In this document: positions 841 to 34,974 of the stretch, piece after piece | Position numbering within the stretch: position 1 is the first letter of the stretch | How the letters are laid out: every line of letters starts with the position of its first letter | Source: Rhodosorus marinus CCMP1338 | Lineage: Eukaryota; Plantae; Rhodophyta | Assembly: GCA_029953675.1 (NCBI GenBank) | Contig: JAMWBK010000010.1 | Coordinates: forward strand, 1-64,000 | Direction of reading: 5' to 3' | DNA: 64,000 bases | The notes under the pieces: generated by a model | What the model was told of the DNA's origin: nothing | Databases searched by the model: none | The model's input: only the letters and a program-made list of their open reading frames with translations | Position numbers and translations under genes: made by a program

Positions 841-1110
841 CGTGAGCTTTATTGGGCAGTCGCCTAATGCGACGTAACACTAAGCCGATTGCTATCTAGG
901 GAATCACTCACAACAACCCCGCTACCGGGGTCTCATGCTACGTTCAAAAGAAAAAACAGGAACCAGTGGGTTCTCCAACTGGTCCGCACGTAGAGCGCCA
1001 AGCGCAATCGCCGCGTTCCCCTGCCATAGGATCCTGTTTAACTGGGATCGTGCATCCCTCAGCTCCTCATCTCGATGCAACAAGTGTTTACAACTGTCCC
1101 GCAAAAAGTC
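841..1110 (-). mobile_element. Family T non-LTR retrotransposon, short 5'-truncated copy (C-terminus of ORF2 plus 3' UTR) inserted in telomere repeats
   Basis: Encodes DFLRDSCKHLLHR...FERSMRPR*, matching the end of ORF 48848-51040. 3' UTR ends ...CCCAATAAAGCTCACG|GGTTACGTTAG. Telomere repeats on both sides. Confidence 0.9.
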
Positions 1111-1133
1111 ACCCCAGACTAACGTAACCCCAG
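1111..1133 (-). repeat. Interstitial telomere seed (about 1.4 units)
   Basis: accccagactaacgtaaccccag, a perfect match to the terminal repeat, lying between two T fragments. Confidence 0.9.
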
Positions 1134-3295
1134 TGGCCTGTAGGCTCCGAGCTGCATCTGAAAGGCGGCCAAGGTGTGCTAGTTTCAGCGCTCGCTTGTG
1201 GCGCCCGAGATGTTTGCGTCGAACCGCTTCAGCTCCTTGCGGTGCGGTAGTACGCGACAGCATAGACGCCTTGTCCTCTAGAGCGCTCCAGACCGTAGAG
1301 AATTCTCCTTCAAGCACATGCGATACCTGAATGCCAACATCAAGTGCAGAGTGTCCGAGGACAAGGCCTGGAAGTCCGACAAGAAGCAGACTGGCGTTTG
1401 CTGGTGCGGTGCTGTCCATAGAGAGCTCTAATGCAGCACGGAAGAGGCAGCTCCATGTGTGAACCTGGGCGCGTGGCACAAATCGCCGTGTGGGAACCGG
1501 GCAGTGTGTAAGGCGCGTCCACTGCCTGCCTCCTTGCGTGACGTCGTCGACGAAGACGCTCCACCGCCTGATCCAGTCTTGGCGATCCGAGAAGAAAAGA
1601 GGCTCTTCGCGGCGTCGTTTGATTCCCCTACGTCTGCTCGGCATTATTGCGCTGGGTTTTCCTGGCTCTCCTGCGTGTCCATCGCGTGATGGTTGCCGTC
1701 AACGGCAACCTGTGTCCCAGTGGTATCCTGTGGAGTCTCCACGGCTGCCGGAGTCATCTCAGTATCCGGTCCGGTGCCATCGGCGGCCACTCGCGAGCGC
1801 TTCTGTTGAGGTGGCTCCGGAAGGTTGCAGAGGAGCTCCGCATGGGGATTGTCTTCGTGTGCTGCGTTCTCAGGTACTTGGGAAGTCGCACTGGTCTCAA
1901 CCGAGGCGTCAACTCTCCCACGGTCTGCCTGTACATCCCCTGGAAGGGACGAGGCTTCAGGGTCTGCGTTCGTGGCGGCTGCAGGCGCTGGGGGTTCCGC
2001 GCTCTCCCCGGGTACCGTTGGAGTACGTTGTGTGGCTTGTAGGGATCCGAGTCTGCTCTCCAGGTACTCGTGTATCGCTGCGAGTGTGTTGAACGAGAGT
2101 TGCCTTCTGCGGAGTCTCGCGCGGATCCGGATAGTCTGTTCAATCGCCCGTTTCAGGGTCTGAGCCCCGATATTCGCTGGGGCAATGAGCTGACGTTCAT
2201 TGTAGCCCAACAGGTTGTCTGTATCCAGTGCCTGGCCCGTGTAGAGAGTCACTTGCCGATCAGGGGTGTCTCTGGGTGAACGAACCGAAGATGCCCGTCC
2301 TGAAAACGCCCCGAGAGATGGCGCTTTGTAGAATCGGAATCGCGTCCGGATGGCAGAGTAAGCACGCATGGGAAGCGATGAAGTCCACGTGCGCCACATA
2401 AGAGCTCGGAATCCCCAAGGCTCTGCAAAGGACCGTGGTGAAATCCGATGGGGCTACCTCGTCCATCCGTGGCGGTCTTACATTCCTCAGGGTCGCCAGT
2501 ACCGGCTTGGTCTCAGGTCCCCAGGAGGACCCTCCCACAGTGGCGTGCAACTGTCGTAGCGCTGCCTGCTGGCTCTGTGGGCCCGGGCGCCCGGCTGGTC
2601 GGAGTTGAGCCTCTGATTCTCGAGCTGGAGTACTTTGGGCAGTCCTCTGAGCGTACGTTGGCCGTGTGCTGCTGATACCGGCAACCGGGAAGGCCGTGGC
2701 ATAGTCCAGTGGGGCAAGGACACCTGTCCCCTCCGCAAGTTGATTGATGATGGGTTCTGCCGCATGTTGATTGACCGCCGCCGTCCGCGGGTGCTGCTGC
2801 GGGGGTTGAGGCGGGGTCGTAGTGGCTCGTCCGTCTTGCCACATATGCGGTTTTGGCGAGCTCATTCAGACGTCCTGTCACTGATTGAAGTTCTTTTGAG
2901 CAGTTGATGCGGGAATAGAGGTTGAAGGCGGCCTGGTAGAAGTCGGCGATGTCCGACTGGCCGATTCCCAGGGCGGTATAGCAGTGGTCGTAGCTCTGCA
3001 GTTGGTGGAGAAAGGCGACAGCTGGGTCTGCTGTGGCCTGCTCCGCGGCACCCTGTTCTGCATTCCTCTCTGCCTCCTGTTCTGCTCCCCTATACTGGTG
3101 CTGTTGCTGCTGCTGCTGCTGCTGCTCTTGTAGCAGCTCTTTCGCCCTCTCCATTTCGCGGGTACCCGAGGTGTGTGGGCCCGCGATCACAAGAGGCTCG
3201 GGGTACGGCCCGCGTACCTCCTTCACAATCATACTTGTAACTTTTTATCACCTTTTTCCGTCGTTTTCCACAAACAAAGCCGTCCAAACCAGAGA
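1134..3295 (-). mobile_element. Family T element, 5' half (5' UTR, ORF1, start of ORF2), broken and capped by telomere repeats
   Basis: 1134-1700 is nearly identical to 51470-52058. The 5' end abuts degenerate telomere units at 3296-3327. Confidence 0.85.
1644..3232 (-). pseudogene. Family T ORF1 (polyQ/helical N-terminus, conserved NVRP domain, low-complexity C-terminus), split by two frameshifts
   Basis: Overlapping ORFs 2513-3232, 2260-2865 and 1644-2399. The RNVRPP...SDF...LG...VDF segment aligns by eye with the ORF1s of families A and C and with T2. Confidence 0.7.
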
Positions 3296-3327
3296 GTAAC
3301 CCCCAGACTCAAGTAACCCCAGACTAA
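3296..3327 (-). repeat. Degenerate interstitial telomere repeats at the 5' junction of the T element
   Basis: gtaacccccagactcaagtaaccccagactaa. Confidence 0.8.
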
Positions 3328-3336
3328 GTTGAAAGA

Positions 3337-6300
3337 GTGGTGGTGGTGGTTCTACTGGTTTTATTGGTTTTATTAGCAGAGCCTAAAGCGCTACGCAAAC
3401 CGTGAAAGGGATCTAAGAACTAGGTAGGGAAGCGTCCAAACCAGGCACCGATGGCGCGCCTCGGCAAGCATGCTCCTCGAATATCGCCACAGAGAGAGAC
3501 TTAAACGCCGCAAAAGTTCCAAGTATTCAACAGGATGCTAGGTGAAACATTTCCGCAACCACTCCAAACCCGCCTTCTCCACGTGACCAAAGCTTTCCAC
3601 AATGAAGGGCTGGAATCGCCGCGAAAAAAAGAGCCCTACGTTGTCAAGTAAGGGAGGCTCCCCCCTCCGTAAATACCGGATAGGAACGGCCACGCCTCCG
3701 GGAATACCCTTCGAATCACCTCCAAATCAAGCGTCCGCGAGACGCTGTTGAACGCGTTCCTAAGTCAACCACCAAAACACCACAGTCCGGCCTCCTGGCT
3801 CGCTCGAGCTCGATCGCATGAGTGATCAGCTCGCACCCCCCGGAAAATCCCACCCCTACCCGTCAAGGCGCCATAAAAGCGGTGCCACCTCCCGGCGAGC
3901 TTCCGTAGACTCTCGACCATGCCGATCGGCCGGAGACGCGGGTGTGCCGGCTCGTGGTCGGGTTTCGTTAGCAAGCAAAGTTGTGCCCGTCGCAGATGGT
4001 CCCAAGGGGCAGACGCACCCCCTGCACCCTGGAACACCGTATTCAGAATTTTCATCAGTGCGCTCTGGTCAGGCTTGCTCAAGGCCTGCAGTAATCCCAT
4101 TCGTAGCCCAGAGGGTCCAGGGCAGCGTCCACGCCGGGAGGCCCGGAGCAAATCCTCCAGATCAGATTCACGAAGCGTCAGGTCGATGCGGAACCTGGCC
4201 AACTCTGGAAGGTCTAAAAATGTCTCGAATTTAGGGAGCAAGTCCACGTCGGACGAGGGGAACAACGCCGACACAGTCTGGTCGAGGCTCTCGTCGTAGG
4301 GGGTAAAGGCACCTGGCCCTCCAAGACCCGTACCGCTCGGCTCAGGTCGCCAACCGCCATCAATTTCTGCACTCGAGTCGTCCTAAGCGAGGCTGTCCCA
4401 GCACGAGTCCTCCGGCCGGATGCCTCGGATGACGCCAAGTAGCTCTGCTGCAACACCTCAAATTCCCCCTTCAGGACTTTGGCCAGCCGTTCTCGGACGC
4501 GCCATCTGCGCTCCGATGTGTGAGTGGGTGCCAGAATCGGGCGCGGCATGACCCCCAAAAATTCTCACATAGCAACGTCCCGTTGATTACGCGCCAGACT
4601 CTCGAAAATAAAATCCAGGATTGTCCCAGCTATGGAGAGCTCTCCTAGAGGGGAGGAGGGGCGGAATCCTTCCTCGGAGGGGTAGGGAGCCTCCTTCCAA
4701 ATAAATCCATCGCCGGAGCCAACTCCGCAGGCGCGTGCGCCAGATGCCCCAGTCTCCGCCTTCCTTGAGGACATAAGACTGCAGGTCCATTGACTGCGAC
4801 CTCGCAGCCGTGCCCGGGGAGCTAATCGTGCTTCTCCCCCTTACACCCGGGGGAGTCGGTCCTGGCGCGCTTGCCTCTTCACCTCGCCAAACTGGTCAAC
4901 CGGCCACTCCGCGAGGCTCGCGGGATGGCTCTCCCGGGATTCAACAAAGTAATAGGGGGGTTCTCGACCGACATGCCCTCCGACTCCCCTTCCTCGCCAC
5001 TCGCACTGGAAGTGGTGCTTGGAGCGAAGCCCTCTAATAATCCCAAACGCCGTAGCTCTTCCTTGTGACTTGAAGTCAGCACAAGGTGGTCAAAAAAGGT
5101 AGAGGAGGCTGCGCGCAGATGGCGTGGACTCCACGCAAACGCTCCAAAAGTATCCGCTCCATGTGGTGAATGCGAAACCAATGGATGGCTGCAGCTTTCA
5201 CACTGGTCTCGCGCTCAGATAGCCCTGCTGTTTCTCCGGGAGAGAGGAAAGTGCCGGAAAAACGGTCGAACCCGAAATGCAATACAACCTGGGGTTGAAA
5301 ACGCAACCAGCGGGCGCTCTCAGGCCACTGCTCGGTACGCTTCTCAAGCAGGGCCTGCAGGTACGTGGCCGGGGTTGCATAGACCACAAAGAGGACATCG
5401 CGACCCTCATAATTGCGAAGATGAAGTCTTCGCGGCTACACCCCAAAGACTCCGCAAAAGTATCCCGAAAACCTCGCATGGACGGGACCTGGCCCAGTGT
5501 AGTCTGGGGCCGGACGTTGCGCACCCAGAGGAATTGCAAAATAGTCGCCGCAGGTCCGCCCTGCTGCTGGCGAGAGGGCAAAAATCTTAGCATAGTCGCC
5601 GTCCGTGCGGCCGTGGTACCCTTTAGCGAAACTGAGACGTAAGACGGGGCCCGTTTGGGACCACCGCGTGCCCCCGCTCGAGCTGTCGCCCACCCGAGGG
5701 CTGGCCCAGGACGGGAAATTCCGCTTCAGCTGAGGGAACATTCGGCTAAGCATGCTGCTAGAATATCGCCACAGGGCGGCGATATTACTCAAACGGCGTA
5801 AAAGCGCCAAGTACTCAGTAGGATGCTCAGCGAAACATTTCCGCAACCCCTCGAAGCACGATTTATCCACATGACCAAAGCTTTCCACAATGAAAGGCTG
5901 AACCGGTGGGAGCGACCCTCGGCGTAGGGCAGACTGGCCATGCTCTCAGCATACCGTCGTTCCTTCACTCGTCGAAGAGCCGAAGCGGCTGCCCCTCGGC
6001 GGTGGGCGGCAGCCGTGAGGTGGGCGCTCGCCACAGGGCATGTAATCGCGAGGTCAACATATGCTGGGCGTTAGGCGGCAGGGTCTGAGACAAGAAGATC
6101 TGCGATACAGCGGCCGGCGCCGTGTCCGAGACCGATCCAGGTAGTTCCGATTCCTCGTCAACCGTATGCCCTACCCGAGTTAAACATTCGCTTAGGATGT
6201 ACTTGAGGCGAGTGTGGCGCCTCGTGCGGAGACCTCGCAACAGTCCGCATGAACCCAAGAAGTGGTAGCCACAAGCGTCAATCCGGCTCTCACATCTCTG

Positions 6301-7147
6301 ACAGATCGACGGCCGATTAGAGTGCACGGGGCTTGTGGCAAACCTAAGTAGACCCGTGCGGCGTGGAAAGGAACTAAAAACTAGGTAGGGAAGCGTCCAA
6401 ACCCAGGCGCCGATGGCGCGCCTCGACAAGCATGATGCTCGAATATCGCCACAGAGAGACACTTAAACGCCGCAAAAGTCCCAAGTATTCAACAGGATGC
6501 CCAGTGAAACATTTCCGCAACCACTCCAAACCCGACTTCTCCACGTGACCAAAGCTTTCCACAATGGAAGGCTGGAACCGGTGGGAGCGACCCTCAGCGC
6601 GAGGCAGACTGGCCATACTCTCAGCATACCGTCGTTCCTTCACTCGGCGAAGGGCCGAAGCAGCTGCTCCACGGCGGCGGGCGGCAGCCGTGAGATGAGC
6701 GTTTGCCACAGGGCATGTAATCGCGAGGTCAACATATGCTGAGCGTCTGGCGGCAGCATCGGAGACGAGGAGATCTGCGATACAGCGGGGCGGTGCCCTA
6801 TTCGAGACCGATCTGGGTAGTTCCGATTCCACCTCAACCGTATGCCCTACCCGAGTCAAACATTCGCTGAGAATGTACTTGAAGCGAGTGTGACGCCTCG
6901 TACGAAGACCTCTCAACAGTCCGCATGAACCTAAGAAATGGTAACCACAAGCATCGATCCGACTCTCACATCCCTGACAGAAAGACGGTCGATTAGAGTG
7001 CCACGGAGCTTGTGGCAAATCCAGATAGATCCGTGCAGCAGAGCGGATCCTAAAGGCATCGAGACGGTGACCCAGTGACGAAGTCAGTGTGGTTAGCCAC
7101 AAGTGCGACAGGTTGCCTCCCATGCCTCGGAGGTGAGCGGCGGTGGT
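3337..7147 (-). mobile_element. Stack of family A non-LTR fragments (3' end with tail, RT/ORF1 segment, two RLE segments)
   Basis: Tail AATAAAACC at 3345-3375. RT-region peptides (LRPIGMVESLRKLAGR). ORF1 peptide (WVRNVRPQTT). RLE ORF 6374-7123 (CQGC...H...C, RTRRH, ADLLVSD, YVDL, KERRY, VESFG). Confidence 0.85.
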
Positions 7148-7157
7148 AGGCTGTACT

Positions 7158-7214: not shown

Positions 7215-8330
7215 CTGTACTAGTCTCCCCGAAACGGTTCAACCCCGTCTTCCTGACTGGCGAGCTGTATTTGACCGCTCTCGAGGCTCCGCCCCGGGGA
7301 TTCGTCCTGCGCCTGAACCTGTTCTAGGGGAGATTGACCCAGTGGTTGCCGCAGAAGAAGAAGTTCCAGTTGATCCTCCTGATGATTCCCAGCGCGCTGG
7401 GAGCCGAGCTCAAGCACGCACGGATGCGCTGCAAAATATCCTTTCTTGGGAATTACACCGTGTTGCATATGGCCGACTCCTGGCGCAGATGGTCTCATCT
7501 TCTCGCGCTCGCGCCCGCCTACGTAGTCTTGGAGGGGTTATTAGCTCTCAGTGGCTCATGACCGTACCAGCCTTTCCGCCACTCACACTGTCGGATTTCG
7601 AAGTGCGTACTTCACTGCGCTTATACCTCGGCTTACATCAGCCCCCTTGGCCGTACGAGATGGGTTCGTCGTGCCCTCTCTGCTCTCAGACCGAAGACAA
7701 CGCAGATTTTGGCGCCCACCTGCTCGCTAGTTGCCCGGCGGTGAAAGGTGCTCGAACCCGCCGCCATACACGGATCTTGAACCTGTTATACCGGGAACTT
7801 CGGCCTATAGTCCGGCAAGCCGGTCTGGAAATCGAACGTGAGAAACCTTTACCCGTCGCGGACTTTCAAAATGATGAACGCCGTGTAGCCGACCTGGTGA
7901 TCACCTGTGACGACAGCCGCCGTACCACATACGTTGATCTTGCTGTTCCTAACCCTCAAGCTAGTCGTTATCTCCCGGCTGCGGGGGAGCGCCGTGGATC
8001 TGCCGCCGCCAGCATGAGACGCCGCAAAGAGATCAAATACGCGGGGGCTTTGTCTTCCCCTGGTGTTCGTGCTTCGGCACTAGCACATCGCTTGGTACCC
8101 CTGATCATTGAGTGCTTTGGGTTCATGGACTCTGTTGGTTCTCGCTGGCTTCGGGAGTTGTTCCGCGAACGCCCTGACCGTCTTCAATCGTTGTTTACCC
8201 GCTTAAGTTTCCTGCTGTGGCGCATGAATGCCGCTTTGATGTTGGAGGCGCGAGTACTTCGCCGCGCTTAGTCTTTTTTTCCCCTCGGGGTTTTTTTTTT
8301 TTCAGCCTCCGATTAAACCATTCGTTCGTT
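7215..8330 (+). mobile_element. Family C non-LTR retrotransposon, 5'-truncated (CCHC, RLE and 3' UTR)
   Basis: ORF 7342-8271: CPLC...HLLASC, RTRRH, RVADL..YVDL..KEIKY..LIIECFG. Colinear with 27824-29230. Ends ccgattaaaccattcgttcg. Confidence 0.9.
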
Positions 8331-8462: not shown

Positions 8463-9650
8463 TCAAAGCAGGCGCTGGACAATAGGACAATTGATGATTA
8501 TTCCTACCGATCCATACTCATCTCCATTCGGACCCGTGATGAAACCATCCAAGACAAGTCCAAGGATCTGGAACTCCTCCAAGACCCTCGTTCTGATTCC
8601 CAACTTGATTGCCTTCTTAGTCCACTCTCCAAGGTTCATATCCCACAGAGGGCTGTAGTCGGTAGCGATGGTTGGGATTCCACCGAGCACATTGAGTGGT
8701 CCACCTTCTCCACGTAGAGCAGATTCGATTCCTTGTCTCTGTGGGTGATCGAAGTTAGAGCTTCTGGGTAGCTGTGCGTTGCTTGGCCCGTTTATGGTAA
8801 CGAAGATTCTCTCGACAGCTGAGAACGCGCTATCATCGCCACCCACGACAACAGCATCTAGACCTGGAGCGAAGGTGGAAGCCTCCAGTGCGGCTACGGT
8901 CATGTCGTTTGCATCGGTGCTGATGTAGAAAACCGGTCTAGCGAAGGAAAATCCAGAGGCCAAGTTCAACGTCACAGTCTGCTCTTCAGGGCAAATTGCG
9001 ATAACCGTATCATGAATATATTTGTAGGCCTTTTTCGCCTGTCTCCCTGAGATTCCGTTGCAGTAGTCATTCAAGAAGTTTACCCCATCCGCAACAATTG
9101 GAGCGTTGTACAGGGAGCGGTCGGTATTGACAAGCCGGATCAGCGGCGTGTAGTTTTTGTCTCCAATCGCTCCAGGCCTCGCCCTTTTTGGTGGAAACGG
9201 ATTAGGCTCATCACCAGGGACAACAGAACGTGCGGGCCGGAAGTCCACCTTTCCAGTCCTGTTTCGAATCTTGAACCCATCCAAGTATACATCGTCCACC
9301 GCCCTTCCGTGTGCATAAGACAGTTTAGGAGCGACGTTGAGGCCAAGTGCTTCACCATTTCCCCGATCAGTAGTATCAGTGAGAATGTAGTAGTGCTTGG
9401 AACCATCTTCATAGTATCCTTCATATAGAGGGAGAGTGACGGTACCAGCATCGAGGTCTACAGTTCCAGACCTCAGCAATTGATGAGGTCCAATCAGCTC
9501 CTTTTGAACAGAAGACGGTGGTGGCCCAAAGTAGGTCAGCGGAACATCGGCTCCAATTGACGGTGGAGCGGGCTGCACGTCATCATCAGCTTTGGCAAAA
9601 TTCAGGCTTGCAGCGAATAGCAGTACGACCAACGATACGAGTTTCGCCAT
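8463..9650 (-). CDS. Intronless secreted protein (~395 aa) of unknown function with an internal two-fold repeat
   Basis: Signal peptide MAKLVSLVVLLFAASLNFAKA, uninterrupted ORF, C-terminal GGPLNVLGGIPT..DYSPLW motif. TATAAG ~105 nt upstream (9755-9760). Confidence 0.85.
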   Translation of the reverse strand: MAKLVSLVVLLFAASLNFAKADDDVQPAPPSIGADVPLTYFGPPPSSVQKELIGPHQLLRSGTVDLDAGTVTLPLYEGYYEDGSKHYYILTDTTDRGNGEALGLNVAPKLSYAHGRAVDDVYLDGFKIRNRTGKVDFRPARSVVPGDEPNPFPPKRARPGAIGDKNYTPLIRLVNTDRSLYNAPIVADGVNFLNDYCNGISGRQAKKAYKYIHDTVIAICPEEQTVTLNLASGFSFARPVFYISTDANDMTVAALEASTFAPGLDAVVVGGDDSAFSAVERIFVTINGPSNAQLPRSSNFDHPQRQGIESALRGEGGPLNVLGGIPTIATDYSPLWDMNLGEWTKKAIKLGIRTRVLEEFQILGLVLDGFITGPNGDEYGSVGIIINCPIVQRLL

Positions 9651-12876: not shown

Positions 12877-15800
12877 GCTACAAGACAGAGCTGCAGCGGG
12901 TGGGGATTTTGGAGGGCTCTGCTTCCAGCACTACTTCCAGCGAGAGTGGTGAGGCAGGGGAGCAGACTGAGGGCATGGCGGTGGAGGACGCCCAGGTTAC
13001 TTTGCTGAAGCCCGCGGGATCCGTTCCGCGAGCCTCGCGGAGTGGGAGGCTCACGACTTTGGTGCGGATAGGAGGTAAGAGAGCGAGGACCGACTCCCCC
13101 CGGGTCTAAGGGGGAGAAGCACGATTAGCGCTCCAGGCACGGCTGCGAGGTCGCAGCCTATGGATCTACAGTCTTATGTCCTGAAGGAGGGCGGAGACTG
13201 GGGCATTTGGCGTACGCGTTTTCGGAGTTGGCTCCGGCGGTGGATTTCTTTGGAAGGAGGCTCGCTTCCCCTCCGTGGGGGCATTCCCCCAGTCGTCCTT
13301 CCTCGTGGAGACCTTCTGGTAGCAACCATTCTCGATTTCATCTTCACGAGCCTGGCTCGCAACATTCGGGACACAGTCATTTGGGTTTTTCTGGGGGTCA
13401 TGCCGCGCCTGATTCTGGCCCCCATTCACACATCGGAGCGCAGATGGCGAGTACGAGACCGACTGGCCCTGTTCTTGAAGGGAGACTTCGAAGTACTACA
13501 GCGCAGCTATTTGGCGTCGTCAGCACCATCCGCCCGTCGGACTCGGCATGGCACAGTGTCGCCCGTGCCAGCTCGAGTACAGAAATTGGTAGCAGTGGGC
13601 GATTTAAGTCGAGCGGCGCGGGTTTTGGAGGGCCAGGCGCCTGTCCTCCCCTACGATGATAGTCTCGCCCAGACGGTGTCGTCTTTGTTCCCTGAGTCCG
13701 ACGTGGATTTGTCCCCTGAATTCGAGGTATTCTTGGACCGTCCGGAGTTGGCCAGGTTTCGCATCGATCTGACCCTCAGTGAGTCTGACCTGGAGGATTT
13801 GCTTCGTACCTCGCGTCGGGGACGCTGTCCTGGACCCTCCGGACTAAGAACAGAGCTATTGCAGGCCCTGAGCCAGCCTGGCCAGAGCGCGCTTCTGAGG
13901 ATCCTTAACAAGTTGTTCCAGGGCGTATCGGGTGCGTCCGCGCCATGGGAACATCTCCGGCAGGCACAGCTTTGCTTGCTCACGAAACCTGACCACCAGC
14001 CGGCCCACCCGCGTCTCCGGCCGATCGGGATGGTGGAGAGCCTACGGAAGTTAGCCGGGAGGTGGCTATGCCAGCGCCTTCGCCAGCGCGTCACAGCTTT
14101 TATGGCGCCCTTGCAAGTAGGGGTGGAATTTTCTGGGGGTTGCGAACTGATCACCCATGGGATCGAGCTAGAACGCGCCAGTAGGCCGGAGTGGGGAGTC
14201 TTGGTGGTTGATTTCCGGAACGCATTCAACAGCGTGTCGCGGACGCATGCGCTAGAGGTGCTCCGACGTGTGTTTCCGGAGGCGTGGCCGTTTCTATCGG
14301 GTATTTACGGAGGGGAGAGCCTCCCTACTTGACAACGGAGGGCACTGTTTTTCAAGCACATACTGGCGTCCAACAAGGCGACCCTTGCGGACCTCTTCTT
14401 CATGCCTGCGCCCTACAGCTCGTACTTTTACGTCTTTCGACTGAGGTCTCGGATCTTCGAATCTGCGCGTACCACGATGACGTAACATTGCTGGGCACCC
14501 CTGACACCCTGGCTAGGGGACTGACCGCGATCGAAGCGATTGCACGTCGCGTCGGTTTGACTGTGGAAACAGAGAAATGTCGCTTTCTCCCCGCGAGGGA
14601 CGTGTCGCTGAACTCTCTGCCACCCACTCTGCGACTAATCAGCGAACGTGAAGGGTTCGAACACCACGGCGTCGGATTGGGGACTGACAACTTTGTCCAA
14701 GCATCCTGCGAGCGAGTTTTGGCACGGCACAAGCAACTCACCGACGCCATTGAGCACCTACCCGACAGCATGCTGCAATCGGCCTGCTTGCTTTCCCGCT
14801 TTTGTGCCGGTCCCAGACTCAACTACTGGTTGCGCAGCCTGCCTCCAGCTTGGGGCTCGTGGATCGCGGCTAAAGCCGACGAAATGACCCTGCAACACTG
14901 GGGAACACTCTTGGATGAGCCCCTCGATCTTGAAGCTGCTCCCGACAGGGACTTTATTCGTGCACAGATCGCTCTACCGTTGCGATTAGGGGGATTCGGC
15001 GTCGCAGACCGTGGGCTGGTATGCTCGCCAGCGGCGGTTGCCTCCTGGGCTACCGCGCTGCGAACGTTGGTGACCTTCCGGATGCGAAGTGCCTGCCTCT
15101 TGGCTTGAGCTTTGACCAACGAGGATCCAGTGACCCTGCAGCCCCCGCTTTTGACAATTTATGATGGTCTTCAACACGCGTTCAGGAGGTGCAACGCCGT
15201 GCCGGACGCAAATCGGTCCCGCTTTCGTTCCTGGAGGGAGCTGTTATGGGGACGAGCTGAAGCGATTGAGGATTGTCCCCTCGACCGAGTTCTTGCCGAT
15301 GACGGAGAGGCTAGCCCCGGGTCCCCTGTTGCAGACTACCCGGGTTTGAGCCGATTGTGGAGCTCCCGCACTGATGTGATTCAACATAGCCTCACCTGGG
15401 GCCAACACAGTGCCGCTCACACAGTCATGCTCAATTCTCCTCTCACGCCGCCTACCACTGGCGCTCGTCTCCGCGGCATGGGAGGCCACCTCTCGCACTT
15501 GTGGTTAACCACTCTACCGTCGTCATTGAGTCATCGTCTCGATGCTTTCCAGTTCCGTTCTGCCGCACGGATCTATCTCGGTTTGCCACAGGCTCCGTGG
15601 CACTCTAATCGGCCGTCTTTCTGTCAGGGATGTGAGAGCCGGATTGACGCTTGTGGCTACCACTTCCTGGGTTCCTGCGGACTGTTGCGAGGTCTCCGTA
15701 CGAGGCGTCACACTCGCCTCAAGTACATCCTCAGCGAATCTTTGACTCGGCTAGGGCATACGGTTGAGGTTGAGTCGGAACTGCCCAGATCCATCTCGGA

Positions 15801-16335
15801 CTCTGCACCGCCCCGTTGTATAGCCGATCTCCTCGTCTCCGACGCTGCTGCCAGACGCTCAACATATGTGGACCTTGCGATTATCTGCCCCGTGGCCAGC
15901 CCCCACCTCACCGCAGCCGCCCGCCGCCGGGGGGCCGCGGCTTCAGCCCTTCGAAGAGTTAAGGAACGACGGTATGCTGAGAGCATGGCCAGTCTGCCTT
16001 GCGCTGAGGGTCGCTCTCACCGGTTCCAGCCATTCATTGTGGAAAGCTTTGGTCACGTCGATAAGTCGGGTTTAGAGTGGTTGCGGAAATGTTTTGCTGA
16101 GCATCCTACTGAATATTTGGCGCTCTTGAGGCGTTTAAGTGTCTCCCTTTGGCGATATTCCAGCGACATGCTTTCCGAGGCGCGCCATCAGCGCCTGGGG
16201 TTGCATGCTTCCCTCCCTAGTTATTAGTTCATCTTCACGCCTTGCGTAGCGCTTCAGGCTATGTTAGTAAAGTCCAGTCCAGTCCAGTAAAGTCCAGTAA
16301 AGTCCAGTCCAGTCCAGTAGAGTCCAGTAAAGCCC
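12877..16335 (+). mobile_element. Family A (A1 subfamily) element, truncated within ORF1, with the full ORF2 span
   Basis: ORF1 end, then ORF2 13160-16227, 3' UTR, tail of AGTAAAGTCC/AGTCC units. Candidate TSD agtca at 12872-12876 and 16336-16340. Confidence 0.9.
13160..16227 (+). pseudogene. Family A ORF2: RT plus CCHC plus restriction-like endonuclease (one frameshift ~14320, in-frame TGA 15106-15108)
   Basis: VDFRNAFNSVSR, GVQQGDPCGP, AYHDD, FCAGPRLNYWLR, LPLRLGGFG, CQGC..H..C, ADLLVSD, YVDL, FIVESFG; CRE-clade-like motif set. Confidence 0.88.
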
Positions 16336-17269: not shown

Positions 17270-19395
17270 AGCACTGGACAGTGCCTTCGCCTCTTCCAGA
17301 GAGGCTGCTCCGGAAGAGGTGTGGGCTGCTCCGGAAGAGGTGTGGGCGACACTACGGGCTAGGTATGAGCCCTCATCACACAAGGCGGTTGAAAAGATAT
17401 GGAGCAGAGTGTACAGGCGGAAACTACACTCGGCTGAAGCCCCTCGGTCCCTGGTTAACTGGTTAGAAAACCAGTTTGCGGAGATACGAGAGATTTCGGG
17501 TGTGCCCACCCATAGAGGATGAGAAAAGACGCGTTCTCATCAAGATACTGGAGGAACGGCGTGAGTACTCAGAGTTCCTGTACCAAGCATGTAAGGATCC
17601 CGATTCGAATTGGATCAGCCTGTGCAAAGACTTCGAAGAATTACACAGGCTGCGAGGATCTAATGTGGATAGGCCTGACAGGTCTACAAAGCCAAAGCCC
17701 ATCGTTAAGAACGAGCCCGAAGAGCATCGTGTTTCGAGGATGACAGCGAAAAAGAAGAAGAAGAACCCCAAACGAATCGTGTGTTTCGGGTGTAAGAACT
17801 TCGGCCACATACGAGCCAACTGCCCTGAGCAGGACAAGGAGGAAAACAGGCCGGAAACGCGAAGATTTCACGCAGGAATGACTGCGGTCAGAGCTCCAGC
17901 GAGGTTCGTGCTGGAATCTGGAGTAACGGACCACATATGCACCTCGGAGATTGCATTCTCGGGCCCCACAAGGATGGTTGACGCTGACGTCACATTCGGG
18001 GACTTGACAACGAAGACCCTCGGCAAGATGGGTACGGTCGAGCTGAAGACGCGAAAAGGAGATACGTTGTCGCTGAAGGACACTATCTACCTTCCAGGCG
18101 GCTCATTGAATGTAGTCAGTCTTAGTAGATTAATGGAAAACGGTTTCTCCATTAGATCTTTAGATGGAAAAACAGTAGTCATAGAAAAGGACGATATCCA
18201 AGTTTTTAAAGCTACCGCCAAGTCTGGTCTTCTTTATACTGATTTGAAAATGAACCGGGACAGCAGCCCAAAAACAGCAGGTCTGTCGTTCCGCAGCAAC
18301 GGAAACACGGATGCCATGGGTTGGCATAGGAGGCTAGGACATCCAGGCGTTGGAGCAATGAAACAACTGCAGAAGGATGGAATTATCAGGGTGAGCGAAA
18401 AGATACCCAACAAGCTCGAGTGTCCCAGTTGTGAAAAGGCAAAAATGATCGCGATGAGTGGAAGGGAAATCACTGAGGAAGGCGGAGACACACGGCGAGT
18501 GTCTACACAGTGATATTGCCGACCCTTTTCCCACGGGAAAAGGGGGAATTAAGTACGTTGGGGTGTTCGTGGACGAAGCGACGGGGTTGCTGAGGCGTAC
18601 GTCCTGGAGCATAGAAGTTTAATCGACGAGGCGCTGCGAGAACACCTGATGAAAATGCGTACCCGATATGGGACTAGTACAAAGAGACTCAAGAGTGATA
18701 ATGCACTTGAGTACAAAAGCATCAAGCCACTGCTGCGCGACTTGGGCATCATCTGGGACCCAAGTGCACCGTACACTCCCTCGAGCAATGGGATCGCTGA
18801 GAGGATGGTGAGAACGGTCTCCGAAAGATTACGAGCCACTATGATCGGTAGCGGGCTACCAGACGATATATGGCCGGAGGCGTTGCCGGTGGTGGTTCAA
18901 AACATTAACCGGACGCCGCGGAAATTTCTAGGCGGAAAGAGTCCACAAGAATCAGTCACCAAGGAGAAACTCAAGATGGAACAGGTGTACCCATTCGGAA
19001 GCGAAACAACTTACAAGGTAACTGGCCCGGGAAAATTGGGGAAGCTGCAAGATAGATCTTCGACGGGAATACTCATGACGATACGAGATTCCCACGTGGC
19101 GAGGATCTATGACCCGTCGACTGATAAATTTGTGGAGGCACGAAGCTGGCGCGTGTCGGAGGACGTTTTCCCTGGCACAAAAATGAACGGGTCTAAGTCA
19201 ACGACGAACGAATGGTGTAATCGGAGGCTGAAACGGCGCAGCCCGACGGGAGGGAGATCTCAATCAATTTGATGCGCAGAGGAGATTCCATGTACGACGT
19301 ACCTGATCCGGAATCTTGGAACGTGGCCATCAACTGGCCCTATGCCAAGGAGTGGAAACGAGCAGCTGCAGAGGAGCTTGGCTCACTGCGTTCCC
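17270..19395 (+). mobile_element. Ty1/copia LTR retrotransposon fragment (gag, protease, integrase; truncated before RT)
   Basis: Zinc knuckle CFGCKNFGHIRANC, degenerate protease LESGVTDH (catalytic D>E), pre-integrase WHRRLGH, integrase RLKSDNALEY and SNGIAERMVRT, WKRAAAEEL. Confidence 0.88.
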
Positions 19396-22330
19396 CAGTG
19401 CTTCAGCATCGCCGCGTCCGTCTTGGCTGCCATCCACGAGCCCCAGTGCGGTGGAAGGCTTCGCAGCCAGTAATTCAGTCGGGACCGGCACAAAAACGGG
19501 AGAGCAGGCATGCCGATTGGAGCATTCTGTCCGGTAGGCGCTCAATGGCGTCGGTGAGCTGCTTATGGCGTGCTAAAACTCGTTCGCAAGAGTCTTGGAC
19601 GAAGTTGTCACTCCCCAAACCGACGCCATGGTGCTCGAGCCCCTCACGTTCACCAAAGACTCGGAGACTAGATGGCAGGGAGCCCCTCGAAACTTCACGC
19701 GGGCCGAGAAAACGGTATTTTTCGGGTTCCACGATTAGACCTACTCCACGTGCGATTGCTTTGATCTGGGTCAATCTCCGAACCAAGGTCACAGGGGTGC
19801 CCAGCAACGTCACGTCGTCATGGTAGGCGCAGATTCGAAGATCCGGCACCTCAGCGGCCAGTCGCAGGAGCACAAGCTGCAGGCACAGGCGTGAAGTACA
19901 GGACCACAACGATCACCCTGTTGAACGCCAGTACGTGCTGCAAAAACAGAACCCTTCGTTGTCAAGTAAGGGAGGTTCCTCCCTCCGTAAATACCGGATA
20001 GGAACGGCAGTGCCTCCGGGAATACCCTTCGAATCACTTCCAAAGCATCATGTGTCTGGGTTACGCTATTGAACGAGATACGGAAATCAACCACCAAAAT
20101 GCCCCAATCCGGCTACTGGTTCGCTCCAGCTCGATCGCATGGGTGATCAGTTTGCAGCCCTCGGAAAATCCCACCCCTACCTGCGAAGGCGCCATAAAAG
20201 CGGTGACTCGCTGGCGTAGGCGCTGGCAAAGGCACCTCCCTGCTAGCTTCCGTAGACTCTCTACCATGCCGATCGGCCGGAGACGCGGGTGTGCCGGCTC
20301 GTGGTCGGGTATCGTCAGCAAGCAAAGTGTGCCCGTCGCAGATGGTCCCAAGATGCAGACGCACCCCCTGCACCCTGGAACAGCGTATTCAGGATCTTCA
20401 CCGGTGCGCTCTGGCCAGGCTTGCTCAGGGCCTGCAGTAACTCCGTTCGTAGCCCGGAGGGTCCAGAGCAGCGTCCAAGACGGGAGGTCCGAAGCAAATC
20501 CTCCAGACCAGACTCACGGAGCGTCAGGTCGGTGCGTAACCTGGCCAATTTTGGACCGTGCAAAAATGCCTCGAATTCGGGGAGCAAATCCACGTCGGAC
20601 GAAGGGAACAAAGACGACATGGTCTGGGAGAGACTTTCATCGTAGGGGAGGACAGGCGCCTGTCCCTCCAAAACTCGCGCCGCTCGACTCAGGTCGAGCC
20701 CGGCGGACAGAGGGCTCCGATGACGCCAAATAGCTTTGCTGCAACACCTCAAATTCCCCCTTCAGGAACATGGCCAGTCGTTCTCGGACGCACCATCTAC
20801 GCTGCGATGTGTGAGTGGGTGCCAGAATCAGGCGCGGCATGACCCCCAGAAATTCCCACATGACGGTTTCACGAAGGTTACGCGCCAGGCTCTTGAAGAT
20901 GAAGTCCAGGATGGTCCCAGCCACTAAGAGCTCTCCGCGAGGTAGGACGACAGGCGGAATCCGGCCGCGGAGGGGAAGCGAGCCGCGTTCGGAAGAAATC
21001 CATCGCCGGAGCCAACTCCGCAGGCGCGTACTTCAGATGCTCCAGTCCCCGCCCTCATTCAGGACATAAGACTGCAGGTCCATGGGCTGCGAGCTCGCAG
21101 CCGTGCCCGGGGAGCTAATCGTGCTTCTCCCTCCCAGATCCGGGGGAGTCGGTCCTCACGCGTTTGCCTCCTAACCTCACCAAACTGGTCAACCGGACAC
21201 TCCGCGAGGCTCGCGGAGTGTCTCCCCCGGGCTTCAACAAAGAAATAGGGGCGTTCTCGACCGGCATGCCCTCAGGCTCCCCTTCCCCGCCACTCGCACA
21301 ATGGACAGCTGCGGGTATCACACTGGTCTCGCGCTCAAAGAGCCCTGCTGTTTCTCCGGGAGAGAGTAAAGTGCCCAAAAAACGGTCGAACCCGAAATGC
21401 AGTACGACCTGGGTTGAGAACGCAACCAGCGGGCGCTCTCAGGCCACTGCTCGGTAGGCTTCTCCAGCAGGGCCTGCAGGTACGTGGCCGCGGTTGCATA
21501 GACCACAAAGAGGACATCGCGACCCTCAGAATTTTCGAAGATGAAATCCTCGCGGCTACACCCCAAAGACTCCGGAAAAATATCCCGAACATCTCGCATG
21601 GACGGGACCTGGCCCAGTGTAGTCTGGGGCCGGACGTTGCGCACCCAGAGAAATTGAAAAGTAGTCGCCGCAGGTCCGCCCTGCTGCTCGCGAGAGGGCA
21701 AAAATCTTAGCATGGCCGCCGTCCGTGCGGCTGTGGTACCCTTCCGCAAAACCGAGACGCAAAACGCCCCCCCTTGGGACCACCGCACCCCCCCTGACCT
21801 GGAGCTGTCGCCCACCTGAGGGATGGCCCAGGACCGGAAAGTCCGCTCCCGCTGAGGGAACATTCGAAGGATTAGGCAACTCTGCACACCTCTCCGAAGA
21901 GGCGCCAGCCGCGGAACCACCTTTGTCACCTCCAGATCTCGGAGCTGCCCTCGCCTGTCCCGGGACAGGTTGTTGATTGACCTGGGGAAGTTGACTGTCT
22001 TCCGCCAACTTGGCCACTCCGCTGGAATTCAAATTCTCACCCGAATTTGAATTTTCCCTGGCCAGGAGACCCGATTCCAACCCCCCTAGCTTCCGGGTGA
22101 GTAGAGGAATGACACCTCGATCGCCCGCGACCGTAACCAGGCTTGTTACAAGAGAGAGCAGGGCACGTACTTGCGTACCAGAGGCGCCCTGTAACTCCAC
22201 CTGCGTGGAGAAAGGGCCCGCGCTAAGATACACTCTGTGTCCACCCCCAGTAGAGATCTCTGCCCGCGGGATCTCCGGACCCTCAGGAGAAGCCCCGGCA
22301 ACCTACCACGAAACCCGAAAAACGGGTGGA
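19396..22330 (-). mobile_element. Degenerate family A copy (ORF1 plus RT region, 3' part missing)
   Basis: ORF1 motifs (LQFLWVRNVRPQTT) and RT motifs (AYHDD, GVQQGD) across several broken frames. Confidence 0.82.
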
Positions 22331-22714
22331 AAGGCAGCGAGAGGATGCGCTTGAAACGAGGAACACTCTCGGACCCGAACACGACTCCATTCTCAACCGA
22401 AAACCGACGGACAGCAAAAGCCTGATAGATATAGAGTTTAGTCTCCTCTCAGAGGAAGCAAAAATCCAGCCGACAGTCAACTTTCGATGTAGATATGAAA
22501 AACATCCATCCTATGAAACCTCGAGCAGATAAGAAGTTCTCAGTCTTTCGTGGTGCTAAGCTCAATTAACTGATAGAACGGAGAGAATCCTCAATTGAAG
22601 TTTCTAAGACGGCTGCGTCACAGCCGCCATGTTGCAACCCCTTTTCCACCTCTGGCTGTGGATTGAGTGAAAAGGTCGGAGAATCAGCCAAACGCTTCGA
22701 CCCGATCCTAACTG

Positions 22715-24780
22715 GCTTTAATAGCATAGCTTAAAGCGCTACGCAAAGCGTGAAAAGGAACTAAGGACTACGTAGGGAAGCGTCCAAACCCAGGCGCCTA
22801 TGGCGCGCCTCGGCAAGCATGCTGCTCGAATATCGCCACAGAGAGACACTTAAACGCCGCAAAAGTTTCAAGTATTCAACAGGATGCTCAGTGAAACATT
22901 TCCGCAACCACTCCAAAACCCGACTTCTCCACGTGACCAAAGCTTTCCACAATGAAAGGCTGGAACCGGTGGGAGCGACCCTCAGCGCGAGGCAGACTGG
23001 CCATACTCTCTGCATATCGTCGTTCCTTCACTCGGCGAAGGGCCGAAGCAGCTGCTCCCCGGCGGCCGGCGGCAGCCGTGAGATGGGCACTTGCCACAGG
23101 GCATGTAATCGCGAGGTCAACATATGCTGAGCGTCTGGCGGCAGCATCGGAGACGAGGAGATCTGCGATACAGCGGGGCGGTGCCCTATCCGAGACCGAT
23201 CTTGGTAGTTCCGATTCGACCTCAACCGTATGCCCTACCCGAGTCAAACATTCGCTGAGAATGTACTTGAAGCGAGTGTGACGCCTCGTACGAAGACCTC
23301 TCAACAGTCCGCGTGAACCTAAGAAAGCATCAATCCGACTCTCACATCCCTGACAGAAAGACAGCCGATTAGAGTGCCACGGAGCTTGTGGCAAATCCAG
23401 ATAGATCCGTGCGGCAGAGCGAAACTGGAAGGCATCGAGACGGTGACCCAGTGATGACGGCAGGGTCGTTAACCACAAATGTGAAAGATGGCCTCCCATG
23501 CAGCGGAGGCGAGCGGCGGTGGTAGGCGGTGTGAGGGGAGAGTTGAGCAAGACTGCAAGAGCGGCACTGTGTTGGCCCCAGGTGAGGCTATGTTGAATCA
23601 CATCAGTGCGCGAGCTCCACAATCGGTTCAGACCCGGGTAATCTGCAACCGTTGACCCGGGGCTAGCTTCCCCCTCGTCGGTGAGTACTCTGTCGATGGG
23701 AGAGTCCTCGAGTGCCTCAGTTGTTCCCCATAACAGCTCCTTCCAGGAGCGAAATCTGGATCGGCTCTCGTCCGGTACGGCGTTGCACTTAGTGAACGCC
23801 TGTTGCAGAGCATCGTAGATACTCAAAAGCGGTGGCGGAAGGGTCACGAGGTCTTCGCTAGTCAGTGCTCTAGCCAAAATGCAAGCACTTCGCATCCGAA
23901 AACTCACCAAGGTGCGAAGTGCGGTAGCCCAGGAGGCGACCGCAGAAGCCGAGCGCACGAGTCCACGGTCGGCCACTCCAAATCCGCCTAATCGTAAAAG
24001 TCGAACGAATGGTTTAATCGGAGGCTGAAAAAAAAAACCCCGAGGGGAAAAAAAGACTAAGCGCGGCGAAGTACTCGCGCCTCCAACATCAAAGCGGCAT
24101 TCATGCGAAAAAGTAGGGCAATCTGGTCATGAATTAGGTCCCTGTCAGGAGCCGCTTCCACATTCAGGGGTTCATCCAAGAGCGTTCCCCAGTGCGGTGG
24201 AAGGCTTCGCAGCCAGTAATTCAGTCGGGGGCCGGCACAAAAGCGGGAGAGCAGGCAAATCGATTGGAGCATGCTGTCCGGTAGACGCTCAATGGCGTCG
24301 GTGAGCCGCTTATGGCGTGCTAAAACTCGTTCGCAAGAGTCTTGGACAAAGTTGTCAGGGCCTAAAAGCGAGCCATGGTGCTCGAACCCCTCACGTTCAC
24401 CAAAGGCTCGGACACTAGGTGGCAGGGAGCCCCTCGAAACTACAAAAAACGGCATTTTTCGGGTTCCACGGTTAGACCTACTCCACCTGCGATTGCTTCG
24501 ATCTGGGTCAATCCCCGAGCCAAGTGCTCAGGGGTGCCAAGCAACGTCACTTCGTCATGGTAGGCACAGATGCGAAGCTCCGGCACCTCAGGGGCCAGTC
24601 GCTGGAGCACGAGCTGCAAGGCACAGGCGTGGAGTACAGGCTCACAAGGATCACCCTGTTGAACACCAATACGTGCTGCAAAAACAGAGTCCGGCATTGT
24701 CAAGTAAGGGAGGCTCCCCCCTCCGTAAATACCAGATAGGAACGGCCACGCCTCCGGAAATATCCTTCGCAGCCTTCAGA
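22715..24780 (-). mobile_element. Family A 5'-truncated copy with a nested C mini-insertion
   Basis: ORF 22888-23976 (RLE region), RT motifs 24440-24703, 3' UTR and tail near 22715-22760. Confidence 0.85.
24002..24107 (-). mobile_element. 106-bp family C insertion inside family A
   Basis: C 3' UTR plus ORF end flanked by aaaagt (23996-24001, 24108-24113). Confidence 0.8.
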
Positions 24781-24879
24781 TCAGGTTTTTGCAACGCTGA
24801 TCGAAGGCATATGCCGAAGAAGCTGGGAATGTGCGGACTTGAATACCTGTACCTGGATTAGGTAATCTTAGGAACGACG

Positions 24880-25185
24880 TTATGTTGAGAGTATGGCCAG
24901 TCTGCCACGGGCTGTGATAGTCACTACCACCAGCCACCCCTTCCATTGTGGAAAGTTTTGGTCACGCGGAGAGGTCGCGTTTGGAGTGTTTGCGAAACTG
25001 TTTTACTAAGGATGCTGTTGAATATTTGGAATTTTTGCAGCATTTAAGTATTTTTCTGTGGCGATATTTGAGCAGCATGTTTGCCGAGACGAGTCAGCGA
25101 GGTTTGGATTTGCATGCTAATTGTCCTAGTAGTTACTTTCATCTCACATTTTCCGTGGCATTTTAGGCCATGGTAATAAAACCAC
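24880..25185 (+). mobile_element. Old AT-shifted family A 3' remnant
   Basis: Degenerate ESFGH..SRLECLR..IFLWRY peptide and an aataaaacc tail. Confidence 0.65.
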
Positions 25186-26687: not shown

Positions 26688-27597
26688 CTCGTCCGTAGCG
26701 CTCCAACGACGTCAGCTCACTGGTTCCCAACTCCCCGTTTGCTCCGCGTCCAGCTTTGAAAAGACCCCAAAGCATTGCCAAACCCGAGCAACTTGCCTTC
26801 TAGCCACACCAGCGCTCCCTGTTGCCCACAAATCCATACATGCAGTATTTATAGCTAACTCAGTCTCCTCTCAAACACGTAACAAACGGTTGGTGAAGAT
26901 ATCAGCGCAAAGCAGCCATAATCATCGTTTCGATAACAGCGAAACCTTCCCTTTCCTCCCCCCGGGTGGATTTCTGAAAAGGGGTAACGAAGATATGAAT
27001 CCCTTTCAACCTCCAGTAGATTTCACTTGTTTTCCTGAGACCGATTCACTTAGTCACCCGTTTCGCCGATGGAGGGAGGTTGTTTTTCGATCTCCGAATG
27101 AACACATGCATTCAATGGAGGGACCGAACAAGCTCATAAAGTCTTGTTGCCACGCATCTCCCGTGGAGGAAGGGTTGAACTATCGTCAGGCATTTCCCCG
27201 CAACTCTATTCAGCGACCCAACACGAGAAACGCGAGAAGGGGGGGAGAGGAGTAAACATACAACATTCAAGGGGGTGGACCAGATTTCTCTCAATCTAAT
27301 TTTCTAGAATAGGCTATAAAAAAACTAACACTGAACCGGAGTGGGGGGGCATATGGCAAGAAATCTACACTCCGCGGTTTGCGAGCTACTCCAATCTTGA
27401 TTTTTCAAAGTTTCCTTTAGTACTTGTTTTTCCTTTTGGTTGTCGAAGACCCTCGGAATTGGAGGTTTTTAGTGACTACACAAAGCGTCAACGACACATT
27501 CAGTCTTACTCAAGTTGGATAAGAAAGAGTCAGTTCAGCGAGCTTCTCAGCCTGGAAATCGAGAGTCTTGGTACACAAAATTTTGCATCGAACATTT

Positions 27598-27755: not shown

Positions 27756-27823
27756 GGGAGAAGGATAAACAGCCAATGGACCAAAAATACAGCTGACCTC
27801 CGACGGCTGCCGAGTGTATACCC

Positions 27824-32519: not shown

Positions 32520-32529
32520 GTGTATACCC

Positions 32530-34950: not shown

Positions 34951-34974
34951 GTCACCGCGGCTTCGTTTCCAGAA

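Follow-up and report, generated by a model that had tools for sequence, protein, structure and literature searches.

Telomere-specific retrotransposons are rare and serve as models for the acquisition of target specificity and for the interplay between mobile elements and telomerase. They are known in insects, a few fungi, Giardia, Chlorella, rotifers and a lizard, and include the telomere-associated long interspersed nuclear elements (LINEs) GilM and GilT of Giardia and Zepp of Chlorella (PMC10088271). In one group of such elements the reverse transcriptase (RT) is joined to a restriction enzyme-like (REL) endonuclease, which has been defined by the motif RHD/N-x19-33-E-x9-21-R/KPD-x12-14-D/E (PMC12857005). 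Here, a LINE family, T, is described from the red alga Rhodosorus marinus (Stylonematophyceae; GCA_029953675.1). The DNA in question is the first 64 kb (the window) of contig JAMWBK010000010.1, its left end, where T fragments lie among telomere repeats at positions 841-3327. A host gene at 8463-9650 of the window occurs in this assembly only, with identical coordinates on the contig. The genome sequence examined consists of the window and 22.6 kb of a second locus (L003), situated 2-24 kb from the right end of contig 7 (JAMWBK010000007.1) and reached through protein P0068; together these cover two chromosome ends and about nine copies of the T lineage. T is very probably a real, telomere-repeat-specific, two-ORF (open reading frame) retrotransposon without long terminal repeats (LTRs) that bears a restriction-like endonuclease (RLE). 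It is also apparently undescribed, as the original prediction for this stretch had supposed, since no mention of it was found in the searchable literature.

The telomere of R. marinus is built from a 16-nt unit, CCCCAGACTAACGTAA, which matches the window 48 times at up to 2 mismatches against 0.02 matches expected, and which can also be written as (GGGGTTACGTTAGTCT)n or in the permutation CCCCAGACUAACGUAA. The terminal array (CCCCAGACTAACGTAA)n occupies 482-841 on the + strand, with the C-rich strand reading inward as a left chromosome end should, and its last bases (836-841) are GTAACC, the target half-site adjoining the T 3' end. At L003, the units stand on the + strand as G-strand, which is the polarity proper to a right chromosome end. 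Literature searches with six rotations of the repeat and with Rhodosorus and telomere returned nothing relevant, a metagenome scan with 30 nt of the repeat gave 0 matches, and the window matched nothing in Rfam, neither a known telomerase RNA nor another RNA family. The genome paper reports telomeres on twelve contigs and contains no telomere repeat sequence, transposon analysis or mention of T (Nat Commun 2023, PMC10250338). The 16-nt repeat is thus apparently unreported so far. The outermost 481 nt (1-481, +) run in the G-strand orientation for about 30 units (29.9 copies by Tandem Repeats Finder) before the switch to the C-strand array, forming a palindrome of 360-480 nt with 482-841 whose centre (440-615) is error-rich, with a drop in repeat quality. 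Positions 1-481 are probably a fold-back artefact of long-read assembly and not part of the telomere in the cell; alternatively, they may represent a real hairpin or snap-back chromosome end.

The interval 841-3327 consists of two fragments of T, both with the sense strand on the G-rich (minus) strand and the 3' end toward the terminus. All T reading frames in the interval are on the minus strand, and the same arrangement is found at L003. Fragment B (842-1110, minus) is a 5'-truncated copy comprising the last 269 nt of T, namely the last 62 codons of ORF2 (1110 to 925), a stop codon (924-922) and an 80-nt 3' untranslated region (UTR) ending in TGCCCAATAAAGCTCAC (858-842). Over these 269 nt it is 78% identical in nucleotides and 87% in amino acids to the 3' end of a further copy at 48.8 kb. 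A 22-nt interstitial telomere tract, TGGGGTTACGTTAGTCTGGGGT (1111-1132, minus), separates B from fragment A (1133-3295, minus), which holds a 5' UTR, ORF1 and the first 171 codons of ORF2. This ORF2 part (1133-1644, minus; ATG at 1644-1642) is cut at ...CAGGCCAC and joined to telomere repeat; it shares 79% amino acid identity with the N-terminus of a transcript-encoded protein, P0025, and 95% nucleotide identity with 51472-52065 (a 594-nt overlap). ORF1 of A (1644-3232, minus) spans about 529 codons with two frameshifts, in pieces at 2513-3232, 2260-2865 and 1644-2399. It is preceded by a 63-nt 5' UTR (3233-3295, minus) with an apparently full-length 5' end, TCTCTGGTTTGG..., which TAC at 3298-3296 possibly precedes. 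In a copy at L003 that resembles a divergent T-like form, T', the 5' end likewise lies 52 nt ahead of the ORF1 ATG and follows immediately on telomere repeats.

Beyond A lie two degenerate telomere units (3296-3327, minus; in the sense direction CTTAGTCTGGGGTTAC TTGAGTCTGGGGGTTAC), which are the remnant of the telomere into which A inserted. Outside T, the 3' tail of an S-family LINE (..AATAAAACCAATAAAACCAGTAGAACCACCACCACCAC.., 3328-3369, minus) abutted this older telomere. Repeats upstream of both apparently full-length 5' ends are degenerate (TTGAGTCTGGGGGTTAC at 3296-3327 in the window; GTTTGTCTGGGGTTATCTGGGGTTAT at L003 20899-20935), unlike the perfect repeats upstream of 5'-truncated copies. 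Such degeneracy may be a by-product of how full-length cDNAs get joined.

The specificity of T for the telomere is most directly visible in its junctions. The three junctions of 841-3327 can be placed within 1-2 nt. The 3' end of B, ...AAAGCTCAC, lies at 842 and is followed by GGTTACGTTAGTCTGGGG..., the junction reading ...AAAGCTCAC|GGTTACGTTAGTC; at the corresponding junction of L003, ...AAAGGATAC is followed by AGTTACGTTAGTC. A third junction comes from a copy inside a Ty1/copia integrase gene (INT; 48768-52059, minus), which is 5'-truncated in ORF1 and carries an ORF2 with an RT and a C-terminal RLE, and here ...AAAGCTTAC is followed by GGTTACCTTTACGG. In these genomically independent cases, two telomeric and one in copia, the terminus ...GCT(C/T)AC resumes at (G/A)GTTAC. 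At the other end of the element, five telomeric 5' flanks share the single phase ...CTGGGGT: those of B, of A (if TAC belongs to T) and of the L003 copies at 8738, 20935 and 21440. With random phase, the probability that four further 5' junctions match the first is about (1/16)^4.

The copia insertion extends this evidence to DNA outside the telomere. The 5' flank of INT, ...GAATACTGGGTTAC, ends in CTGGGT(TAC), and its 3' flank, beginning after ...AAAGCTTAC with GGTTACCTTTACGG, reads GGTTAC CTTTACGG; by chance, GGTTAC would be met at this position about once in 4096. The target is CTGGGTTAC, the telomere's CTGGGGTTAC with one G fewer. Removal of T together with one GGT or GGTTAC restores an empty site, GAATACTGGGTTACCTTTACGG, which translates in frame as EYWVTFTDEVSR. 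This peptide follows directly on a weak GAG-pre-integrase match (E = 0.13), and the rejoined flanks give no rve match in Pfam; the identification as copia integrase is therefore based on the continuity of the frame and on the familiar DxCG...YxVTFxDExSR motif. Taken together, the junctions and the empty site indicate that T chose a 7-8-nt telomere-like site in non-telomeric DNA. The original prediction, drawn from the letters of this stretch alone, had proposed a novel 16-nt telomere repeat, T junctions within it at 841, 1110 and 3296, a sense strand coinciding with the G-rich strand and a 3' junction resuming at GGTTAC, and the observations given above bear it out on each of these counts.

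It could be argued that T is an ordinary, non-specific subtelomeric LINE and that the repeats at its borders arise only because telomerase heals breaks in T arrays. Healing clearly occurs, as A is cut in ORF2 and joined to repeats and an S-like element and a T' copy at L003 are likewise cut and capped, and the S family is equally abundant in the subtelomere. Such healing predicts random internal joins of variable phase. This is the pattern at the capped broken elements of the window and L003, where the truncated element resumes at TGGGG, TTAGTC, CTGGGG or CTTAGTC, a variability expected of telomerase-type healing that contrasts with the fixed phase at T ends. In contrast to that prediction, the intact terminus ...GCT(C/T)AC meets (G/A)GTTAC three times and five 5' flanks stop at GGGGT, so that fixed-phase junctions are already seen at T ends in a small sample. 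The copia insertion has both of its flanks together with a telomere-like target, and the 3' ends of the S family have unrelated flanks. An origin of the borders by healing alone is accordingly very unlikely.

Copies in the terminal arrays provide a second line of evidence. In one array at L003, a T 3' end is followed by 19 nt of repeat and a 5'-truncated T; in another, a truncated S-like element is followed by about four repeat units and the 5' end of a T', which is itself cut after 480 nt and followed by 28 nt of repeat and a 5'-truncated T'. All six T and T' copies in the terminal arrays of the two chromosome ends direct their 3' ends toward the terminus. B, INT and the L003 copies at 8739 and 21441 are truncated at differing 5' points, and a common 3' terminus is found in three copies. 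The absence of LTRs, the intact 3' ends and the variable 5' truncation typify target-primed reverse transcription (TPRT), and overlapping copies give a composite element of about 4.87 kb. GenBank lists the ORF1 and ORF2 fragments of T at L003 8379-12565 as "hypothetical proteins" (genes NDN08_004843 and NDN08_004844), and in the ORF1 gene model, P0069, the N-terminal part runs across a T 3' end plus a telomere unit, giving the peptide VTLVWG.

A further possibility is that recombination or break-induced replication copied blocks of T plus a short tract from one end to another, so that repeated transposition would be unneeded. MoTeR arrays grow in this manner, with interstitial tracts of at least 3 repeats breaking often (PMC7367193), and the short tracts seen here fit the survival of stable arrays. 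Copies at the two ends, however, differ in their truncation points and are only 78-95% identical, indicating separate insertions, and recombination leaves the insertion inside copia unexplained. As the main source of the arrays, such copying is very unlikely.

The protein domains of T were also anticipated, though in the wrong place. The original prediction had read CRE-like RT and PD-(D/E)XK endonuclease motifs in the ORF2 of 841-3327; RT and endonuclease motifs are present in the T copy at 48768-52059, whereas 841-3327 itself contains no RT or endonuclease domain. The INT copy has a 730-aa open stretch of ORF2 (48848-51040) with frameshifts upstream. ORF2 is composed of an N-terminal extension, an RT, a variant zinc knuckle and a restriction-like PD-(D/E)XK endonuclease. 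The RT matches Pfam RVT_1 (E = 1.3e-7 and 2.5e-9) and, in PDB profile searches, R2 and L1 ORF2p. The endonuclease motif of INT, RHD-x20-E-x10-RPD-x14-D followed by K..K..Y, has its spacing within the published REL definition (PMC12857005), and a T-like element on a transcript-like contig (T'', on L002; 46% identical to T) has RHN...E...RPD...D. A 20-sequence profile matches R2 continuously from the RT through the RLE (E = 1.7e-49) and L1 ORF2p in the RT only (2.7e-28). The AlphaFold model of the 730-aa frame (predicted local distance difference test, pLDDT, 81; predicted template-modelling score 0.80) retrieves R2 in all of its top seven Foldseek matches (E = 6.6e-16 to 2.9e-11, template-modelling scores 0.48-0.55), the best of them (6.6e-16, 0.55) extending over about 750 columns, and L1 ORF2p at 8e-8. 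As modelled, ORF2 thus has an R2-like fold and domain order, with RT and RLE. Pfam scans revealed no Exo_endo_phos match, the signature of apurinic/apyrimidinic endonucleases (APE), in the T proteins, and no zinc finger in the ORF2 N-terminus or in ORF1. Together with the constant junction phase at two ends and the empty site of INT, the R2-like ORF2 upholds the earlier proposal of a telomere-targeted RLE element that inserts by TPRT.

The separate ORF1 that had also been predicted is found in A, in the L003 copy, in T' and in T''. Relative to A, it is conserved at 85-92% in amino acids in the L003 T copy and at 40-60% in T' (32.6-33.8 kb of the window). It matches no Pfam family, no homologue was found outside R. 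marinus, and its AlphaFold model (pLDDT 45) is too poor for a fold search; ORF1 is a lineage-specific protein. The stop codon of ORF1 runs into the start codon of ORF2: the overlap reads TAATG in A and INT as well as in the L003 copy, and ATGA in T' and T''. In the RNA, the UAAUG overlap suggests coupling by termination and reinitiation. Differences between two copies at codon positions 1, 2 and 3 amount to 14.5%, 13.9% and 41.1% in ORF2 and to 5.7%, 9.2% and 13.0% in ORF1. The excess at position 3 indicates that ORF2 evolved as coding sequence, and ORF1 has the same trend, more weakly.

Transcripts related to T and about 80% identical to it are present in MMETSP. P0025 (840 aa, about 80% identical) is uninterrupted and has the same start, MP(S/N)RRRG..., as ORF2, which fixes the ORF2 start at 1644. 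Like P0001 and P0024 from the same source, it represents ORF2 as an unbroken frame whose end (...LGLPIPRIVNAA and stop) falls immediately ahead of the zinc knuckle and endonuclease, indicating that an endonuclease-less form is expressed in some strain. At the 3' end, T carries the motif GGCRRCTGCCCARTAAAGCTYAC, and the 25 nt up to ...GCTCAC are identical in T and T'', beyond which the two diverge; the element boundary is therefore GCTCAC, and GGTTAC is target sequence. A 5-bp stem-loop lies just upstream of the boundary, at 873-859, with its pairing kept through two compensatory double changes, as seen in four sequences only.

These properties can be arranged into a cycle. The ORF2 endonuclease would nick the C-rich telomere strand at 5'-GTAACC^CCAGAC-3', and the freed 3'-OH would prime reverse transcription at the conserved RNA 3' end (...stem-loop-UGCCCAAUAAAGCUCAC), perhaps aided by pairing of a read-through GGUUAC... 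with the target. Synthesis of cDNA would proceed toward the centromere and often stop early, which would leave 5'-truncated copies. A cut of the G-rich strand 3 nt away (GGGGT^TAC) would then produce a 3-bp GGT duplication and keep the repeat register. In this order of nicking and priming, the T 3' end would always face the chromosome terminus. An element so oriented cannot have its cDNA primed by the chromosome's own 3' end and needs an internal nick, which fits the conserved endonuclease.

An addition without endonuclease, in which the terminal 3' overhang serves as primer as in HeT-A and TART of Drosophila or in Athena elements, agrees with the telomeric association of T and with the end of the P0025 transcript ahead of the endonuclease domain. 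End-priming would, however, place the 5' end toward the terminus, whereas the 3' end of T faces it at both chromosome ends; moreover, both T and T'' have kept the catalytic motifs of the endonuclease, and INT is an internal insertion with a target duplication, which makes this route highly improbable. It is barely credible that misassembly of a repetitive chromosome end created the whole structure. The inverted telomere copy at 1-481, with its degraded centre, does look like a typical fold-back long read; the T junctions, however, are in good sequence inside the boundary of the palindrome, and the same junction types recur on a second contig (L003), where an annotated GenBank gene model spans one.

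Under the proposal of telomere-specific insertion by TPRT, the locus could have arisen in three steps. First, a full-length A would have entered an older telomere, itself adjoining an S element, about two repeats away from the base of that telomere. The chromosome would then have broken in the ORF2 of A, at codon 171, and the break would have been capped with new telomere repeats. Finally, a 5'-truncated B would have inserted 22 nt into the new telomere.

Several observations weigh against telomere-specific insertion by T or limit its reach. All copies seen are truncated or frameshifted, so that present activity is conjectural, and the sample comprises only two chromosome ends and about nine copies. 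The putative nick sites are deduced from the junctions alone. The interstitial tracts are all short (about 19-66 nt), which a simple model of insertion anywhere in the telomere does not predict. Insertion may require no more than about one unit upstream of the nick, or longer tracts may have been lost, since such interstitial tracts break readily in Magnaporthe (PMC7367193). The zinc knuckle of T and T'' is CX2CX3HX10C, with Q in the usual histidine column; compared with the canonical C-x1-3-C-x7-8-H-x3-4-C, the cysteines are conserved and HC stands at the end. At 32.6 kb, T' and its telomere unit are both inverted with respect to the chromosome end. Lastly, the 3' flank of T'' on L002, AGTCTCCCCC, is neither GGTTAC nor telomeric. 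The specificity may not be valid for the whole T lineage, or the L002 contig, which also contains an S-family fragment of 90-93% identity, may be chimeric.

The remainder of the window is rich in related and unrelated transposons. T' itself (32533-34974, +) consists of part of ORF1 and the ORF2 N-terminus; a G-strand telomere unit (32533-32549) precedes it, and an S element cuts it off at 34974. The LINE family S (ORF1 and RT-RLE ORF2) is very abundant, and its nested and tandem fragments cover most of the first 54 kb (3350-7154, 12880-16300, 19388-25180, 34972-46712 and 53133-53888). A third LINE, U, has an open 768-aa RT-RLE frame at 28155-32582 (minus) and a second, 99% identical fragment at 7215-8328 (+), a similarity that suggests recent U activity. 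The 5' region of U adjoins the telomere unit at 32533-32549, head-to-head with T'. Near the U 3' end lie tandem repeats (27595-27734 and 27823-28397), including a 16-nt unit, TTTCGGATAGAAAGTT, in 8.8 copies that is unrelated to the telomere, and 90-bp and 203-bp duplications. The Ty1/copia element is degenerate (about 47100-54620, minus), with gag, protease, integrase and RT pieces split by INT and by the S fragment at 53133-53888.

Adjoining the copia 5' end, two telomere pieces stand head-to-head at 54627-54660 (GGGGTTACGTTA against CCCCAGACTAACGTAACCCCAG), and a similar pair, GTCTGGGGT-A-ACCCCAGAC, is found at L003 21432-21450, at a T' 5' junction. The piece CCCCAGACTAACGTAACCCCAG (54638-54659), a 22-nt, template-sized stretch of C-strand, was considered as a telomerase RNA template. 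It was set aside because it is paired with the adjoining inverted piece, lies amid transposon debris and has a counterpart in the similar G-to-C strand switch at the L003 T junction; judged by this arrangement, it looks more like a snap-back footprint than a telomerase RNA template.

T was compared with other LINEs by neighbour joining of 93 RT domains (290 columns, 100 bootstraps), a set free of references for the named clades (CRE, NeSL, R4, Hero, Genie). In the resulting tree the T lineage is monophyletic (100), S and U group together (96), and T, S and U form a small clade (95). S and U, the nearest relatives of T, share with it the ORF1 core NVRP...DF...HAC and the RT-RLE ORF2. In contrast to T, the S 3' ends carry (AGTAAAGTCC/AGTCC)n tails and have unrelated, non-telomeric flanks. 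Two environmental (metagenome) elements, L013 (Ga0007791_10006164) and L063 (Ga0208048_1008538), have one RT-RLE ORF with a C2H2 finger at its N-terminus, a feature seen in them alone among the elements examined, and are MoTeR-like and telomeric: L013 has (CCCTAA)3-5 flanks on its sense strand, with the ORF start inside the repeats, and L063 ends in (AACCCT)n. They are placed elsewhere in the tree, and just 3 of 100 replicates put T closer to L013 than to S and U. As T groups with S and U and away from the CCCTAA-flanked elements, its telomere targeting looks like an independent acquisition.

T adds to the known telomere-specific retrotransposons a new eukaryotic lineage, the red algae, for which no earlier case was found. 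It also shows a combination of features that is new, in which a restriction-like endonuclease occurs together with a polarity like that of SART, two ORFs and UAAUG coupling, and it gives evidence that such an element arose independently out of sister families in one genome that are not telomeric. The long 16-nt target makes the insertion register readable without ambiguity, which is hard with repeats of 5-7 nt, and the repeat should ease the finding of the R. marinus telomerase RNA. A broader reading is tentative and, at present, doubtful: the T lineage would be a regular component of every R. marinus end that co-evolved with the exceptionally long 16-nt telomerase repeat, which would imply a telomerase RNA template of at least 17 nt, and aids the rebuilding of broken ends alongside telomerase. 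It would open the list of telomere-specific retrotransposons in red algae, would be the first of RLE type known to nick the C-rich strand, and would have arisen independently out of ordinary LINEs of the same genome.

Among described elements, SART1Bm of Bombyx mori (R1 clade) resembles T in its fixed position in the telomere repeat, in a sense strand continuous with the G-rich strand and in nicking of the C-rich (bottom) strand (PMC7265360). SART1 also has two ORFs with a UAAUG stop-start overlap (Kojima et al. 2005, cited in PMC2881922). Further likenesses are a 3' UTR that is recognised by the RT and the need for some repeats upstream of the nick. SART1 differs from T in its N-terminal APE endonuclease and poly(A) tail, where T has a C-terminal RLE and a 3' end, ...GCTCAC, joined directly to the target with no poly(A); its target repeat is 5 nt (TTAGG) as opposed to 16 nt, and the RT lineages are unrelated. 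Of the solved structures, that of R2 comes closest to T; R2 also gives the best profile match, from the RT over linker and zinc knuckle to the RLE, and shares with T site-specific TPRT, a staggered second cut and a structured 3' UTR; unlike T, it has a single ORF, N-terminal zinc-finger and Myb domains and a ribosomal DNA (28S) target, and its identity to T is only about 14%. GilM, GilT and Zepp form terminal arrays of opposite polarity, or insert into each other's tails.

CRE clade elements (CRE1/2, SLACS, CZAR, MoTeR1, FoTeR, Cnl1) usually carry one or more N-terminal zinc fingers. The fungal MoTeR1, FoTeR and Cnl1 resemble T in combining an RT with a C-terminal REL endonuclease (CCHC-RHD-E-R(P/A)D-D/E) and in lying in telomere repeats, in arrays with short telomere tracts between the copies and with truncated relics (PMC12857005, PMC7367193). 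The analogy with MoTeR that had been drawn from the window alone is one of function only: in the RT tree T groups with S and U and not with the CCCTAA-flanked single-ORF elements, MoTeR and FoTeR direct their 5' ends toward the terminus, the polarity opposite to that of T (PMC12857005, PMC7367193), and MoTeR1 and FoTeR have a single ORF (PMC12857005) where T has two. MoTeR further differs in the variant repeats at its 5' end, and the target of these fungal elements is TTAGGG.

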